DNA of 64,000 bases from Oikopleura dioica (lineage: Eukaryota; Animalia; Chordata): contig OU015566.1 in NCBI GenBank assembly GCA_907165135.1, positions 2,480,001-2,544,000 of the forward strand, written 5' to 3'. Positions within the stretch are counted from its first letter, which is position 1; each line of letters opens with the position of its first letter. Shown in pieces: positions 2,400-61,249 of the stretch. The notes under the pieces were generated by a model. That model saw only the letters and a list, made by a program, of their open reading frames with translations. It ran no database searches and was not told the origin of the DNA. The translations under genes and the position numbers were made by a program.

Positions 2400-3687
2400 A
2401 AATTTCGTATAATTTTTTTGTAATAAAGTATAATCAACCAATGGACACACCAGTCTGCCTTGGTATTTTTAATGCAGTTTTAAAAGGAAAATTCTTCAAA
2501 ACCACTCTTGATGCCGAAAAGATAGACGTCACGCAAGTTGCTTCTGAGCAAGTTGTAAATCCCAAGTTCAATTAACTCAACTCACAATTGGCACATAATA
2601 AAAAGCATCGCTGAATAGCATCTTGGCGCCGGAGGCAAAGTTTCAGCCTCTATTTTTTCGGTTAGCGATCATACTTTTTTTCTGAATTTTCCGGAGAAAT
2701 TCAAGAGATTTGAAAATTCAAGAAAAAGAAATCAATTTATCAAAAAGGTAAGAAATGACCCTTTTGACGGGAAAAAGCCATTGAACTTGTCAGAAGAACG
2801 CTCGTGTGGCTCTGAGCCTTCATGCGTCTTGAAAGTATCGGAATAGCAAACAACGCGTAAAATGCGCGAATTAATCATTATGCTCCAGCAATACCTGGAT
2901 CTCCCCTTCACTTCCACTCTTAAAATGTTCCAGACTCACTTTTTTCGTTCTCTCGAATTTTGTTCTTTCTTATGAAAAGAAATAGAAAGCGAAGAAAAAT
3001 GGATTCAAGAGAATGGGAATTCATAAAAAAATCTGACAAAAAACGGATCGATTTATTTTAATACGACTGAATTTTAATTGAGATGAAATTAAATTAGCAG
3101 CGCGTATTCCCAAACTCAGAACGTACCCTTCGACCCTAATGAGTTTGGACGAAGAACAAGAGTTTAATTTTCAGTTTTCGTTTCAAAATAGGTTCGTTTC
3201 GCGAAAATAAATTCTCTAGTCAAATCCTCATTCATTGTGAAAAAAAGAGAGAATCCTGCGTTTTCAGAAGATATCTGAAACTTTTAAATTAACGGTTTAG
3301 TTTATAGATTTGACAAAAGAATAGGTAGGATAAATCACATATAAATCATATTTTTGTTAAGAAAGGGGGCAATTTTTTATTATAAGGTAGCCAATGACCT
3401 TAGGACCATTCTGACTAAGGATAAGGTACTTGGGGGTGATTTCGTACCCTGAGGCCATTTAGGTACTTCCAATGTCTCAGAATCTCAGTTTTTTTTTGCA
3501 TCAAAAGAAGGATGGTTTTTTATTGAACTGTATTTTTGTTATTTTATTTGAAAGGCTATGAATGTACATTGTACAATGGCTATGGTTAGATGAATGTATA
3601 TTCGGGATTCGATCTTTGCAGTTTTTCGCTCAGCAATCTTAAAAAAAAATTGATAATAATGGTAAACGCCTTGTTATTTGTAATTTT

Positions 3688-4542
3688 TTACCTTGCTTGA
3701 TGTCGACGATGATCCAGATCGGAAATGAAAACATCATCATCAGTCGTTTCATCCTCTTCTTCCTGCGAGTCGTAGTCAATTTCTTTTGAATCAAAGGATT
3801 CTTCGCTTTTTCCTTTTTTCGACAAATGCGACATTTTTTCAGGATAGCAAATCATCAAAAAGCCGGTGAGAAGAATAAACGGATTCAAGGCCCAAACAGT
3901 AATCAGTGCCCAACCAAACACAAACTGCGCTGTATCACAAGCCAGTAAACAAGCAGTAGCAAAAGCCTCTGCATTCCACCAGCTTTTAAAAATATCGGCA
4001 GCGTATAAAATCGAGCAAAGAATATACGCAGCCGCCTAAAAGTAACTCTTTCCCTCTTTTTTTGTCCAATTTTCACCTGCAAAACAGCCATAGCACCGGA
4101 AAACTGAACCCATCTCAGTAAAATTTTCGCTCGAATTTTTCGCGCATGAAAAGCAGCGACCAAATAGCCGACTAGGCCAAATACTCCGGCGGCGGAACCG
4201 ACTACTGTCAGGGATTTCATGAAGAGGAGTTGTATTGTCTGAGTGATGTAGAACCGAGTTTTTGAGGAAAGAGCTTACCTGATAATGAAGTGGAGCTAAG
4301 TCATTCAATTCGCAGGCATAGCTCCCTGGCTCATTTTCGAAACAGTACATCTAAAGATAAAATTGAATAGGACAGCACTGTCTTTTGTCTTTCGAACTTA
4401 CCCATATTCCCTTCCACATTCCGAACATATCTCCCAAAACATTCGCATGCTTCGAAAGCATCATCCATTTGTCAGAGACGCAGCAAGAAAAATTCAAACC
4501 CGTAAAAATTATGTACCAAATTAGCAAGTAAAAATCTCTCAT
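3688..4542 (-). CDS. Claudin/PMP22/EMP-family four-pass membrane protein, ~240 aa
   Basis: Exons 4542-4402, 4350-4279, 4238-4077 and 4035-3688 are joined by GT-AG introns of 51, 40 and 41 nt. The protein has W...GIWMYC...C in loop 1, four hydrophobic segments, FGWAL before TM4 and an acidic tail. Confidence 0.8.
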
Positions 4543-56059: not shown

Positions 56060-59000
56060 TTATATGTCAGCAAAAGTCTGGTAGTAAAAGTTTTTGACGC
56101 TCATTTGAGTAGCCGAGTCCGGATGATTCTTGGAAACCATCGCGTAGAGATCGCCGCTGCTGTAAGCATCGCTCGTCGCATAAGTGCCCGTGCCGATCTG
56201 AGTTCCATCAACGCTGACAACGTACTCGAGAGTCGATGGGGATCCAACTTGTTGGTTGACTTCGACAGAATAGGTGTTCCAGTCGCCGTCAGTGCAGGTG
56301 GGAAAGAAAGCGACATGGTGATTCGGCCCGCTTGGATCATTGACGCTGACCGACAGTTGTCCGTCAGTTGGCTGGTCGGAAATCGAAAATTGTCGATTAC
56401 CAGCAGTTCCATCTTGATCGGTGACTGGAGTGTACGTCAAATGAATGATGTTCCTGTAAGCTGTATCGCCGGCGATGTTCTGGCAGAGAATGTCGACGGA
56501 AACCTTTCAAAAGGGCTCTGACCTTTACTCACTACTAGTGAGTCACTAGTTCAAAAAAGCTGAATATGTATCTAAGTCAGCGAGTATTTCAAAGACCGTT
56601 CCTTATAGTTGAGGGCAGCACTGACAGTCGTTATTTGAGTATTTGACGCTGGACTGATTTCGCAGCCATTGACGATTGCAGTGCAATCTGAAAGTCCAGA
56701 GCATGGATCAGTCGCGCAGGAAGGAACATCGGCGAAAGTTTGGTAGTAAAAGTTTTTGACGCTCATTTGAGTGGCCGAGTCTGGGGTATTCTTGGAAACC
56801 ATCGCGTAGAGATCGCCGCTGCTGTAAGCTCCGCTTGTGGCATAAGTTCCCGTGCCGATCTGAGTTCCATCAATGTCGACAACGTATTGAAGGGTGGAAG
56901 GGGATCCAGAAAATTGGGTGACTTCGACAGAGTAGGTGTTCCAGTCGCCGTCAGTGCAGCTTGGATTAAAAACTGCACGATGATTCGGTTCGTTCGGATC
57001 ATTTACGCTAACCGCCAGTTGTCCGTCAGTGGGGATGTCGTTAATTGAAAATTGTCGATGACCAGGAGTTCCATCATGTTCGGTTACTGGATCGTTCGTC
57101 AAGTGAATAATGTTTCTGTAAGCAGTGTCACCGGCGATGTTCTGACAGAGAATGTCGACGGAAACCTTTCAAAAGGGTTCTGATAATTCGAGAAGAGTTA
57201 TTAATATAATATAATAAATGACATGCTACAAAATCTATTAAAGTTTTTGAATATTCGAATAATGACAGAGTTTTTCCTGTGTGTCAGAACTCATACCTTA
57301 TAATTGAGGGCCGCGCTGACAGTCATTATTTGTGTATTTGACGCTGGACTGATTTCACAACCATTGACAATTGCAGTGCAGTCTGAAAGTCCGGCACAGG
57401 GATCAGTGGCACAAGTGGGAACACCAGTAAAAGTTTGGTAGAAGAAGTTTTTGACGCTCATTTGGGTGGCCGAGTCTGGGGAATTCTTGGAAACCATCGC
57501 GTAGAGGTCGCCGCTGCTGTAAGCATCGCTCGTCGCATAAGTGCCAGTTCCGATCTGAGTTCCATCGACGTTGACTACATATTCAAGAGTGGACGGAGAT
57601 CCAGAAACTTGGGTGACTTCGACAGAATAGGTATTCCAATCGCCATCAGTACAGGTTGGATAGAAAGCAGTATGGTGATTTGGTCCACTTGGATCATTCA
57701 CGCTGACCGCCAATTGACCGTCAGTTGGCTGGTCGGAAATCGAAAATTGTCGATTTCCAGGAGTTCCATCTTGATCAGTGACTGGGGTGTACGTCAGATG
57801 AATGATGTTCCTGTAAGCTGTATCGCCGGCGATATTTTGGCAGAGAATATCTACCGAAACCTATCAAACGGGCTCTGATTTTTACTCGATGGTGCAATTA
57901 TTTATTCCGAAATAAAATGATTATATAAGTCAGCAAGTGTTTCAGGGACCGTTCCTTATAGTTGAGTGCGGCGCTGACAGTCATTATCTGAGTATTTGAA
58001 GCTGGACTGATTTCGCAGCCATTGACGATTGCAGTGCAGTCTGAAAGTCCAGAGCAAGGATCAGTCGCGCAAGAAGGAACGTCGGCGAAGGTTTGGTAGA
58101 AGAAGTTCTTGACGCTCGTAAGGTAGGCGGAAGGGAGAGTTCCATCAGATACCTTCGCGTAGAGGTTGCCGCTGCTGTAAGCTCCGCTTGTTGCGTAAGT
58201 TCCCGTGCCAACCTGAGTTCCATCGACACTCACAACGTATTGGAGGGTTGACGGAGAGCCAGAAACTTGGGTGATTTCGGCAGAGTAGGTGTGCCAGTCG
58301 CCATTAGTGCAGGCCGAAACGAACTCAACACGATTATTTCCAGCTGCAGGATCGTTAACATTGATCCCTATTTCATCGGTGTTGTCTGTATCCAAAATTG
58401 CAAATTGCCGACTGCCAACATCGGTTTGATGAGCGCCCGAGTCTTTCGTCAGGAGAAGAATGCTCTTGTAATAAGCGTGACCGGGAACGTCGTGGCATTG
58501 AACGTCTGCTGAAACCTTGAAGTCGGGCGATTACATCATTTTTCAAGTTAAATCAAGACGATTTTGAATGAGAATCTCTACCGCCCGTTCCTTGTAGTTA
58601 AGTGCGGCGGTGACAGTTCCAACTTGATTATTCCATCCAGGATTGACTTCGCAGCCATTGACGATAGCAGTGCAGTCAGAAAGACCAGAGCACGGATCAG
58701 TCGCGCAAGAAGGAACGTCGGCGAATGTTTGATAGTAGACGTTTTTGATGCTGGCTTGGTCGGCGGAAGCGTGACGATTATCGGATATTTTCGCGTAGAG
58801 GTTGCCGCTGCTGTATGCTGCGCTCGTGGCGTAAGTGGCCGTGCCGATCTGAGTTCCATCGACGCTGACAACGTATTGTAGAGTCGAGGGAGTGCCAGAA
58901 ACTTGGCTGACTTCGAGGGTATAGGTATTCCAGTCGCCATTCGTACAGCTATAGGATAACGCTCTTCGATTGTCAGCCTCTGCTGGATCAGCACAATTGA

Positions 59001-60827
59001 TGCCTATTTCACCAGGATTCGCCGAATCCATTATCGCAAATTGCCGACTGCCAATATCGGTGACATGAGCACCTGCATCCTTAGTTAAAAGAAAGATGCT
59101 TCTGAAAGAAGTATCGCCAGCGATATCACTGCAGAGCACATCGGCGGAGACCTTGTAATTGAGGGCAGCGCTGACAGTGGCGACTTGAGTATCAACAGCC
59201 GGGCTGATTTCGCAGCCACTAACAATGACCGTGCAGTCGGAAAGTCCAGAGCATGGATCGGTTGCGCAGGCTTGTAAGTCAGCAAAAGTTTGGTAGTAGA
59301 AGTTTTTGACGCTGGTTTGTGTGGCTGAATCGTGGAAATTGTTTGAAACCATCGCGTAGAGATTGCCGCTACTGTAAGCGTCGCTGGTGGCATAAGTGCC
59401 CGTGCCAATCTGAGTGCCATCAACGCTGACTACGTATTCAAGGGTGGAATGTGATCCAAGATCTTGATTGACTTCGAGGGAATAGGTGTTCCAGTCGCCC
59501 TCCGTGCAGGTAAAAAGGAAGCTTTCCCGGTGATTCGCGCCGTTAGGATCGTTTACATTGATTTCAATATTCTGAGCATTAGGTGTGTCAGCAATCAGAA
59601 ACTGCAAAGCGCCTGCATTTCCGGTTTGGTCGACAACTGGGTCGGTTGTCAAATGAAGAATGTTTCTCGAGGCTGAATCTCCGACGATGTTTGTGCAGAG
59701 AACGTCTGCTGAAACCTACGTTGCGGGCTTGAGAAATATTCTAGCGGTAATTTCTTTTTGCAAAAACTCTTCTTTTTAAATTTCTGAAGCCCCCTTCCTT
59801 GTAATTGAGAGCGGCGTTTACTGTCGTTACTTGATTATTGACAGAAGGATTGATTTCGCAGCCATTAACGACGGTTGTGCAGTCTGAAAGTCCAAAGCAC
59901 GGATCAGCCGCGCAAGAAGAATGGTCGGCAAATGTTTGGTAGTAATAGTTTTTGACGCTCATTTGGGTGGCTGAGTCTGGGTAATTCTTGGAAACCATCG
60001 CGTAGAGATCGCCGCTGCTGTAAGCATCGCTCGTTGCGTAAGTGCCAGTGCCGATATGAGTTCCATCGACGCTGACTACGTATTGGACGGTGGATGGAGA
60101 TCCAACAACTTGGTTTACGTCGACGGAATAGGTGTTCCAATCGCCGTCAGTGCAGCTCGGGAAGAAAGCCGCATGGTGATTGGGCCCGCTTGGATCATTA
60201 ACGCTGATCGCCAATTGTCCGTCAGTTGGCTGGTCGGAAATGGAAAATTGTCGATTACCAGCAGTTCCATCTTGTTCAACGACTGGAGTGTACGTCAAAT
60301 GAATAATGTTCCTGTAAGCAGTGTCGCCGGCGATGTTCTGACAGAGAATATCGACGGAAACCTTTGTTCAGAGGTCTTTTAATAAGAGACTTATATCATT
60401 ATTATCATCAGTAAAAGGCTATCGGAGGATACAATAAAGCAAATTTTGTACTTACAGTAAAAAAGTGGCGCTCGGACGGGAATCAATCCGGAGACTGTTC
60501 ACATTAGATAGAACAGACCCCTCCACAACATCATATCTAGAAACGATAAGAAAATTTTGGCAGTTTTTATGAGATGTTTCATGAAAATAAATAAAGAGAC
60601 CATTCCTTGTAGTTCAGTGCAGCGCTTACAGTCATTATTTGATTATTACTGGAAGGGTTGATTTCGCAGCCATTGACGATTGCAGTGCAGTCTGAGAGTC
60701 CAGTGCACGGATCAGAGCAAATTGTTGTTGAGGTTGTCGTTGTGGTCGAAGTCGAAGTCGTGCTCATAGTTGCCGTCGTTGTTGTTGCCGTTGAGATTGT
60801 ACTCCCTATCGGTCCAACATGGTTTAG
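56060..60827 (-). CDS. Secreted protein with Thr stalk and seven tandem ~165-aa LamG/concanavalin-A-like modules, each preceded by a small Cys linker (start not located)
   Basis: Seven copies of VS.DILC.NIAGD...CT[DNE]GDW[NH]TY...Y.V.VDGTQIGTGTYATS.AYSSG.LYA.VS...VKNF.YQTF, each preceded by CxxDPCxGLSDCT..V.GCE. Confidence 0.9.
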
Positions 60828-61249
60828 CTGATAATACAGCGAAAACGCGAAAAATAGAAAATGAAAGATCTTTGAAAAGAGTTCATAATCTGATGACAAA
60901 TAGATGAAGTGCGAGCGGACTCGAAATTCTGCTTCTACCCAAAATTACATGATCGTCTTACGTTGCGAAGAATCCGAACTCTACCTTATCTATCATTTTT
61001 CTCTCTTATTCTGATTTGCTTTTGATAAACAAGTACTCATGCTCAGTGGCTTCTAGAAATAAAACGGGACCGTTTACAATATCTTTTACAGTAACAAGTT
61101 GTTACTAAAGGACATTCAAATTTTCATTGCTTTGAGTTTCTTTTCTACTCAAGAAAAAACGGTATTTCAAACATCGGACATTTTGAAACGAAAAGAATGA
61201 TATTTCAATATTTATATTTGTTTATTTACAGTTAAAAAGCTTTTTTCTC

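Follow-up and report, generated by a model that had tools for sequence, protein, structure and literature searches.

GA, GT and intronless states of one intron at the module junctions of an Oikopleura dioica gene, and a co-varying stem that joins the intron ends

Introduction

In the chordate Oikopleura dioica, 11-12% of the introns are non-canonical and mostly of the GA-AG type, as stated in three reports (PMC4122922, PMC7072748, PMC8008620), with the Okinawa genome paper giving 11% (PMC8008620), a GA donor context of AG|GA+A (PMC7072748) and a three-fold enrichment of non-canonical introns among new introns (PMC4122922). For the precise removal of these ~11-12% of non-GT introns, a 2026 study in Nucleic Acids Research looks to U2AF and to the methylation of small nuclear RNAs (PMC13326754). 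The present analysis concerns a stretch of 64,000 nucleotides (nt) from O. dioica (contig OU015566.1 of assembly GCA_907165135.1, positions 2,480,001 to 2,544,000; hereafter the window), in which a gene on the minus strand, extending from about 60899 down to 56060, encodes a hydrophobic and Thr-rich start followed by seven copies of a module of 188 amino acids (aa). The same intron position at the junctions of these modules is found in three states, namely with a GA donor, with a GT donor, and without an intron. In the reading preferred here, to which a probability of roughly 0.68 is given, a single lineage-specific intron was copied together with its module, used a GA donor, later changed to GT in one copy and was lost in another, and kept a stem between its two ends. 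To our knowledge, O. dioica has no minor spliceosome.

The introns of the window gene resemble the U2-type G*-AG introns described for O. dioica (PMC4122922, PMC7072748, PMC8008620) in GA at +1/+2, the 3' AG, the exonic AG, A at +3, their short length (75-244 nt here), their new, lineage-specific position and their precise removal (seen here in one copy). What sets the window gene apart from them is that one homologous site can be followed over seven junctions in three states (GA, GT, absent), that a paralog adds GC and CC starts, and that a conserved end-to-end stem accompanies the site; no description of a co-varying terminal stem on such introns was found in the literature searched. Another appendicularian, Fritillaria borealis, as it is cited in PMC13326754 and PMC7789003, likewise has a U2 spliceosome handling many introns without GT/AG, the difference being that its introns are mostly AG-A(N), with the acceptor altered too, whereas the introns studied here all keep AG as their acceptor and vary in the second base of the donor only.

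The inheritance of introns by tandem duplication, and their precise loss by reverse-transcriptase-mediated or deletional routes, are described in PMC3443670, and the window gene agrees with that picture in that homologous exons flank homologous introns and one junction is cleanly intron-free. It differs in that duplication copies an existing intron and creates none from a duplicated AGGT, and in that the loss is internal, single and not 3'-biased. The nearest described analogue of the stem is found in the introners of Amoebophrya, non-canonical introns with inverted repeats of 8-20 nt that join their ends and direct repeats of 3-5 nt at their boundaries (PMC7789003). Both systems have non-canonical boundaries, complementary ends predicted to bring the exons together, and a short boundary repeat (AAGG here); unlike the introners, the window introns are not multicopy or dispersed, their arms, at 5-13 nt, are shorter, AG is retained as the acceptor throughout, and the copies arose by tandem duplication of coding modules. 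In the nonconventional introns of euglenids and in the pairing of 5' splice site and branchpoint regions in yeast, intramolecular pairing shortens the distance between reactive sites, as is proposed here; the euglenid introns lack GT/AG altogether and may leave by another route, and the yeast stems serve canonical introns, whereas here the stem accompanies G[A/C/G] donors in an animal with the major spliceosome only. GA-AG introns, the sequence context of their donors and their over-representation among new introns are on record for O. dioica, and tandem intron copying and precise loss are ordinary; what is added is a polarised series at one site (intronless, gain, GA, then GT or loss, with GC/CC in a paralog) together with a co-varying terminal stem.

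Six introns at one homologous junction

All six introns of the gene are in phase 0 and lie exactly between an exon end reading ..LNYK (..AAY TAY AAG) and an exon start reading VS[AV]D (GTTTC..). Five are of the GA-AG type, beginning with GAATGG, GAAGGG and, three times, GAACGG, one is of the GT-AG type (GTATGA), and every acceptor is AG; the remaining junction, at 59152/59151, is contiguous (AAG GTC). The coordinates, phases, donors and acceptors that an earlier note had read from the sequence alone were all reproduced, with every feature on the minus strand, as was its claim of three states at one homologous phase-0 site. The five GA introns share the donor context AAG|GAA (exon AG, A at +3), which is the published AG|GA+A context, and GA-AG splicing, which the note names as a trait of O. 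dioica, is documented for this animal (PMC7072748, PMC4122922, PMC8008620). An in-frame stop is present in each of the six introns. The pattern goes beyond chance: the flanking exons are modules of 65-88% identity with a ratio of non-synonymous to synonymous substitution rates (dN/dS) of 0.09-0.22.

Counted from the 5' end of the gene, the first intron, I0 (60362..60605, 244 nt, phase 0, GAATGG..AAAG), carries the stem arms GGTCT (60601-60597) and AGACC (60377-60373), with an end-pairing probability of P=0.042 against shuffled sequences. I1 (59716..59797, 82 nt, GAAGGG..GTAG) forms a hairpin over its whole length with the arms GGGCTTCAGAAAT and ATTTCTCAAGCCC (fold z=-3.6; end pairing P=0.006), and is the intron skipped by an RNA contig, as discussed below. 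I3 (58516..58590, 75 nt, GAACGG..CAAG) has a stem of 8 base pairs (bp) formed by CGGGCGGT (58587-58580) and ATCGCCCG (58531-58524; P=0.003). I4 (57861..57954, 94 nt, GAACGG..ATAG) has its arms at 57950-57942 and 57878-57870 and is homologous over its full length to I6 (56504..56601, 98 nt, GAACGG..AAAG; arms at 56597-56589 and 56521-56513), which has no further copy in the genome. Between them lies the GT-AG intron I5 (57166..57296, 131 nt, GTATGA..AAAG), which is homologous to I4 and I6 and carries a perfect 7-bp stem of GTTCTGA (57290-57284) and TCAGAAC (57183-57177; P=0.034). The 3' end CCCTTTTGAAAG, which the note had seen to be common to I5 and I6, is correctly described.

A side observation concerns the length of I0, of which about 98 nt (60447-60544, intron nt 62-159) match another place in the genome (G000:C5:6371778-6371875) with 74% identity and E 3.5e-10, so that its extra length probably includes an inserted small repeat fragment.

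Splicing and the use of the GA donor

RNA evidence comes from X1, a poly-A marine-plankton metatranscriptome, whose contigs are 90-99% identical to five of the modules. One contig omits exactly the 82 nt of I1 at 59716-59797; the joint has an ambiguity of 3 nt, and only the GA..AG placement gives an AG acceptor. An in-frame GT is available 30 nt inside I1, and it is the GA..AG interval, not the GT alternative, that the contig removes. A second contig breaks off at 57168, where nine unaligned letters agree with the end of a ..LNYK exon; such an overhang fits the removal of an intron before a VSVD module and is too short to name which junction. Hence, of the mapping across the six junctions that the note had proposed, precise removal was obtained for I1, and for a VSVD junction there is the nine-nt overhang only. 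The X1 contigs cover exons and stop at exon borders, and the differences between contigs and modules have the signature of a coding sequence, 30 of 40 falling at third codon positions and 31 being synonymous versus 9 non-synonymous. Among modules M1, M5, M6 and M7 of the window gene, the dN/dS of 0.09-0.22 is accompanied by a dS of 0.46-0.83. Searches of transcript-derived proteins, in which the exons were used separately, one at a time and not as a joined protein, returned only P0001, P0002 and P0027, none of them from a spliced transcript of this gene.

The reading frame provides a second line of evidence. A single GT is found near the start of I0, I4 and I6, 5 nt into the intron and out of frame, and no codon starting with GT precedes the first stop, so that the GA donor is forced in these three copies; the correspondingly shifted acceptors do not end in AG. 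For the introns other than I1, we infer removal from the in-frame stops and from strong purifying selection on the exons downstream.

It might be held that the GA starts are not the donors used, the gene relying on other sites such as an internal GT, retaining the segments, or being a decaying array. RNA support at one junction only would allow this, as would the in-frame GT found inside I3 (9 nt), I1 (30 nt) and the introns of the paralog L013 (6 nt), and the absence of an in-frame ATG at the start of the gene. It is nevertheless highly improbable, given that the exact GA..AG interval of I1 is removed, that I0, I4 and I6 offer neither an in-frame GT nor an AG at the shifted acceptors, that purifying selection acts on all downstream exons, that RNA contigs stop at the exon borders, and that a relative (P0027) retains the GA start.

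Descent of the intron copies

Matches to the module number at least 151 in a six-frame search of this genome, which makes the family a very large one. A scan of 20 paralogous loci with a profile hidden Markov model (HMM) found 80 of 89 module junctions to be contiguous, and junction introns were confined, among these loci, to the window gene (six) and its closest paralog L013 on contig 1 (three). By this comparison the intron is judged to be lineage-specific and the intronless state ancestral for the wider family; among the intronless junctions that could be placed cleanly, only 4 of 70 read AAG|GT. The module cores were used for a maximum-likelihood tree (aa 35-147; 35 rows from eight loci, with 12 rows that cover fewer than 90 residues left out, and with a midpoint root only). 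The seven window modules form one clade (support 100/99), nested with modules P2, P5, P6 and P7 of L013 (100/98), and an intron stands directly before nine of the eleven modules of this group.

The introns themselves are related in a corresponding manner. I4 and I6 align over their full length (z=12), I5 aligns to both with z=3.4-4.3, and I1 to I3 with z=3.0; I0 is weak in these alignments overall (z ~1) but carries the end motifs that are common to all nine introns (six in the window gene and three in L013). In a BLAST search of the 64-Mb genome, I0, I1 and I6 matched only themselves. Since the introns are homologous, the relationships of the flanking modules match theirs, and this search met no further copies in the genome, the simplest history would be a single gain, after which units of module and intron were duplicated in tandem and the gene was duplicated once. 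The note had called the locus a natural experiment on donor interconversion and on intron gain and loss; the three states at one homologous site bear out this description, and repeated gain does not hold, as the copies represent the drift of one intron after duplication. Beyond this genome, a protein scan of metagenomes for orthologous genomic loci found none, and all 36 of 36 metagenomic matches to a degenerate junction pattern were chance hits without a module.

A different origin would be repeated, independent insertion of a mobile introner, similar to a miniature inverted-repeat transposable element, into AAG|GT, the stems then being terminal inverted repeats without any role in splicing. 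The inverted ends of 5-13 nt and the AAGG direct repeat across both boundaries of seven of the nine introns are in line with this idea, as are the very similar ends (GGGTTCTCGA / TCGAAAACCC-TGATAAAG) of an intron at a different module position in the distant paralog L025, the similar GA..GGGT..ACCC..AAG units scattered through the genome, and the precedent of the Amoebophrya introner elements (PMC7789003). Dispersed copies, however, were not recovered by BLAST; the flanking exons are homologous, with relationships that mirror those of the introns, so that duplication explains the copies within the gene; and the arms diverge between copies and yet stay complementary, unlike freely drifting relics. 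One should also recall that AAG|G is the plain splice consensus, and that there is no clean target-site duplication beside the arms, the AAGG repeat not being adjacent to them. An introner origin is accordingly regarded as improbable.

Polarity of the donor states and of the intronless junction

On the preferred reading of one gain and tandem copying, the three states can be ordered. The GT intron I5 is nested among the GA copies I0, I4 and I6 (the young units J0, J4, J5 and J6, with GAATGG or GAACGG starts), and its first 18 nt align without gaps to the GAACGG.. starts, with 11 of 18 positions identical and differences at +2, +4 and +6. As I5 is nested among GA copies and its 5' end aligns to theirs, its GT donor is derived from GA. 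The module and intron phylogenies that the note had recommended thus speak for homologous copies and for GT as the derived state, and they point most likely to a loss at the intronless junction.

The latter conclusion follows from the position of M3, the module downstream of the contiguous junction, which pairs with M4 (98/86) inside the window clade, and from the 120 nt upstream of that junction, which match other window junctions better (0.73-0.79) than they match any junction of L013 (0.58-0.68). Because both sides group with intron-bearing window units, a secondary and precise loss at M2|M3, leaving the frame intact, is the most likely explanation. Alternatively, this junction may never have held an intron and may represent an ancestral contiguous K|V boundary like P1|P2 of L013, with gene conversion making the window modules look young. 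In its favour, the family was originally intronless at this site, L013 retains a contiguous ..ALNYK|VSADV junction, the end of the C-part of M2 (TQVATVSAALNYK) resembles that of L013 P1-P3, and the N-terminal tip of M3 is marginally closest to L013 P2 (0.64 versus 0.60-0.62). Against it one has to set the grouping of M3 with M4 within the window clade (100/99), the greater similarity of the upstream 120 nt to other window junctions, and the fact that tandem duplication of a periodic unit copies whichever intron state is present. On balance this alternative is unlikely, although it keeps appreciable weight beside the loss.

The paralog L013, which the note had not taken into account, extends the series. 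Its homologous introns start with GCTCGG|GTC (twice) and CCCTGG|GTC (once), with an in-frame GT 6 nt inside, the use of which would add two residues, AR or PW; CC being an unlikely donor, at least the CC copy of L013 probably uses the internal GT. Two relatives represented by genomic open reading frames read through the intron, P0027 as ..ALNYK|ERV...RLQ|GFSR (with a GA start, 91 nt, and T:A at stem positions +8:-13) and P0023 as ..ALNYK|ARV.., from which it follows that GA and GC starts together with the internal GT are conserved in other lineages. In I0, I4 and I6 one G fewer is present (GAACGGTC), which shifts the internal GT out of frame. Such a shift would be tolerable only if AAG|GA was already a working donor.

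The end-to-end stem

A stem between the intron ends, absent from the note, was seen as well: in all nine introns, about positions +5..+13 pair with -10..-18, leaving a free tail of 9-11 nt (..TGAA.AAG). The arms differ between copies and are complementary within each, as in GGGTC/GACCC, GGTCT/AGACC, GGGCTT../..AAGCCC, CGGGCGGT/ATCGCCCG and GTTCTGA/TCAGAAC. End pairing beats shuffled sequences in nine of nine introns (P 0.001-0.095), and pairing is better between the two ends of one intron than between ends exchanged among introns (P=0.00065). In an end-anchored alignment, the fixed register +5..+13 / -10..-18 has 71.8% paired cells compared with 60.4±3.2 after shuffling (0 of 500 shuffles reaching the observed value) and a covariation score of 0.299 compared with 0.144 (again 0 of 500), while registers slid by 1-3 columns fall to 35-54% paired. 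Both sides have changed in five of the nine stem pairs; the pair +8:-13, for example, is C-G in I3, I4 and I6 and T-A in the sister intron I5 and in Ia and Ib of L013.

No such stem was found in four canonical GT-AG introns of paralogs (P 0.21-0.54). Stem pairing does recur in a GC-AG intron elsewhere in L013 (P 0.003) and in an intron of L025 at module position 102 (P 0.004). A genome-wide search with arm patterns, in which backwards patterns served as control, gave the following picture. With GGGT/ACCC arms, there were 11 hits with a GA donor (control 2), 15 with a GC or GG donor (control 2) and one with a GT donor (control 5); with GGGC/GCCC arms, seven hits had a non-GT donor (control 3) and six a GT donor (control 0), three of the six being one repeated sequence. 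Of these two tests, the one with GGGT/ACCC arms links the stems to non-GT donors.

Some further introns and units may be recorded here. L013 (G000:C1:14568500-14576000) contains two phase-1 GC-AG introns, at ~3097-3163 and 3710-3781, both at module position ~33 (GNPG|..|DRTF); in the first, GGGG/CCCC arms keep close to the register of the nine introns (P=0.003), and those of the second are degraded (P=0.36). The L025 intron (~1551-1639 in G000:C4:4706500-4709000) has a 10-bp terminal stem of GGGTTCTCGA and TCGAAAACCC followed by the tail TGATAAAG, and at both ends it looks similar to the junction introns. Two donors come into question for it, an AG directly after ..GTQ and a GT that lies in frame 6 nt further in. 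The hairpin introns were also compared with known structured RNAs and mirtrons, a candidate identity that was rejected, with no Rfam match at E≤1. The pattern search further returned three near-identical palindromic units with TTAGGG-like repeats (AGGCTAGGGTTAGTTAGGGTTACC..GGTAACCCTAAG..) at G000:C1:7482216-7482283, C3:683210-683276 and C3:996682-996749, which look like a dispersed repeat with telomere-like motifs.

Proposed history and its weighing

Taken together, the data would fit the following course of events. Within a large O. dioica family of putatively secreted, multi-module jelly-roll proteins, one module subtype would have acquired a single lineage-specific spliceosomal intron at its K|V (AAG|GT) junction, and the intron would have multiplied passively, as units of module and intron were duplicated in tandem and the gene itself was duplicated once. 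The working donor in the window gene would be the non-canonical AAG|GA, as seen in one copy and forced by the frame in three more. After the duplications, GA would have changed to GT in one copy and the intron would have been lost precisely at one junction, the stem being maintained by compensatory change in all copies, the GT copy included. The stem may hold the weak donor beside the branch and acceptor region, which would help the U2-type spliceosome to define the intron. The anatomy of the gene, the homology and polarity of the copies, one spliced junction and the covariation are observations; any function of the stem and the splicing of the remaining copies belong to the conjectural part of this scheme.

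Several points weigh against it. On the side of splicing, one of six introns has been seen spliced, in a single contig with a depth of ~2, which stems from a wild relative of 90-99% identity and not from this strain; three bulk RNA-seq runs carrying the same species label yielded no reads and hence no test; and the GT in I3 (GCG|GTAGAG) means that GA use is not forced there. With regard to polarity, the internal GT of L013 could be the real donor, which makes the ancestral donor type uncertain, and gene conversion among modules could produce a spurious window-specific clade, in which case the intronless junction would possibly be ancestral. As for the stem, six of the nine introns keep exactly to the register and the other three deviate from it by 1-2 nt, the common descent of the nine means that they do not amount to nine independent observations of a stem, the GGGC/GCCC arms did not separate GT from non-GT donors, and the GGGT arm itself contains a GT.

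A further-reaching proposal is that the stem is a required cis-element which replaces pairing with U1 at G[A/C/G] donors, so that the major spliceosome of a chordate would choose its sites under the guidance of structure. This is put forward tentatively, the odds being against it. If true, the requirement for a stem would explain the "G*" of new introns, in which the G of the boundary repeat would be the sole fixed base, and the gene would be the cleanest natural test set, with homologous GA, GT, GC and intronless copies and a stem retained even after the change to GT. Homologous introns in an identical exon context, with differing donors and a common co-varying stem, allow mutations of donor and stem to be read against natural controls, and within one gene family a non-canonical intron can be followed, with polarity, from its origin through its multiplication along with the modules to a copy made canonical (GA to GT) and a junction that has most likely lost it precisely. 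Should the stem turn out to play no part, what is left is a neat, unremarkable instance of tandemly copied GA-AG introns of the known type.

Exons, protein module and family

The first recognisable coding exon (60606..60899, minus strand, as are all exons) encodes a hydrophobic stretch, a Thr-rich linker and a Cys-rich C-part ending in ..ALNYK; in this exon the HMM matches positions 122-188. It is followed by the exon of module M1 (59798..60361, 188 aa), which matches HMM positions 1-188 with E 8e-112 and is covered by X1 RNA contigs, and by the exon of M2 and M3 (58591..59715), a single open frame of 375 aa that the HMM resolves into two adjoining full modules with the intronless AAG|GTC junction inside. 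M4 (57955..58515), M5 (57297..57860) and M6 (56602..57165) occupy one exon each, assigned by coordinates and HMM, and the exon of M6 is covered by three X1 contigs. The last exon (56060..56503), assigned in the same way, encodes M7 without its Cys-rich C-part and ends with a TAA stop at 56062-56060, followed by AATAAA at 56044-56039. At the other end of the gene, the Thr-rich frame is open back to 60899 and includes a signal-peptide-like stretch (IFHFLFFAFSLYY) without an in-frame ATG; the nearest ATG (60886-60884), beside T-runs, sits one base out of frame. The missing start codon may be due to an exon further upstream, to a homopolymer error in the assembly, which is Nanopore-based, or to a polymorphism.

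No Pfam family scored above threshold for the module, the matches below it being noise. The structure modelled on the basis of 52 modules is a sandwich that consists of beta strands alone, with a predicted local distance difference test score of 87.6. Its best matches in the Protein Data Bank are weak (E ~1e-3, template modelling scores of 0.26-0.44) and comprise the N-domain of thrombospondin-1, PL7 alginate lyases, galectins and neurexin LNS domains; the model thus suggests a concanavalin-like jelly roll, followed by a linker with four Cys residues. A profile search returned 443 cluster representatives at E≤0.001. One of them, P0003, encoded on a Joint Genome Institute metagenome contig of 4744 bp, has 1302 aa and seven modules with no introns; therefore the family exists outside this assembly with contiguous junctions. 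That the product is a secreted matrix (house) protein is a reasonable guess, and a link to a named oikosin was not established from the house-proteome paper.

Two groups of paralogs show additional features. In L018 and L021 (G000:C1:16338000-16343000 and 16796500-16800000), long Thr-rich, mucin-like linkers encoded by ACN repeats stand between the jelly-roll core and the Cys-rich part, and they vary in length from module to module. In L028 and L029 (G000:C4:5901000-5905300 and 5965500-5973000), the modules are broken after ..GDRTF by segments starting with AAG|GGAG.. or AAG|GGGG.., which are possible GG-AG introns.

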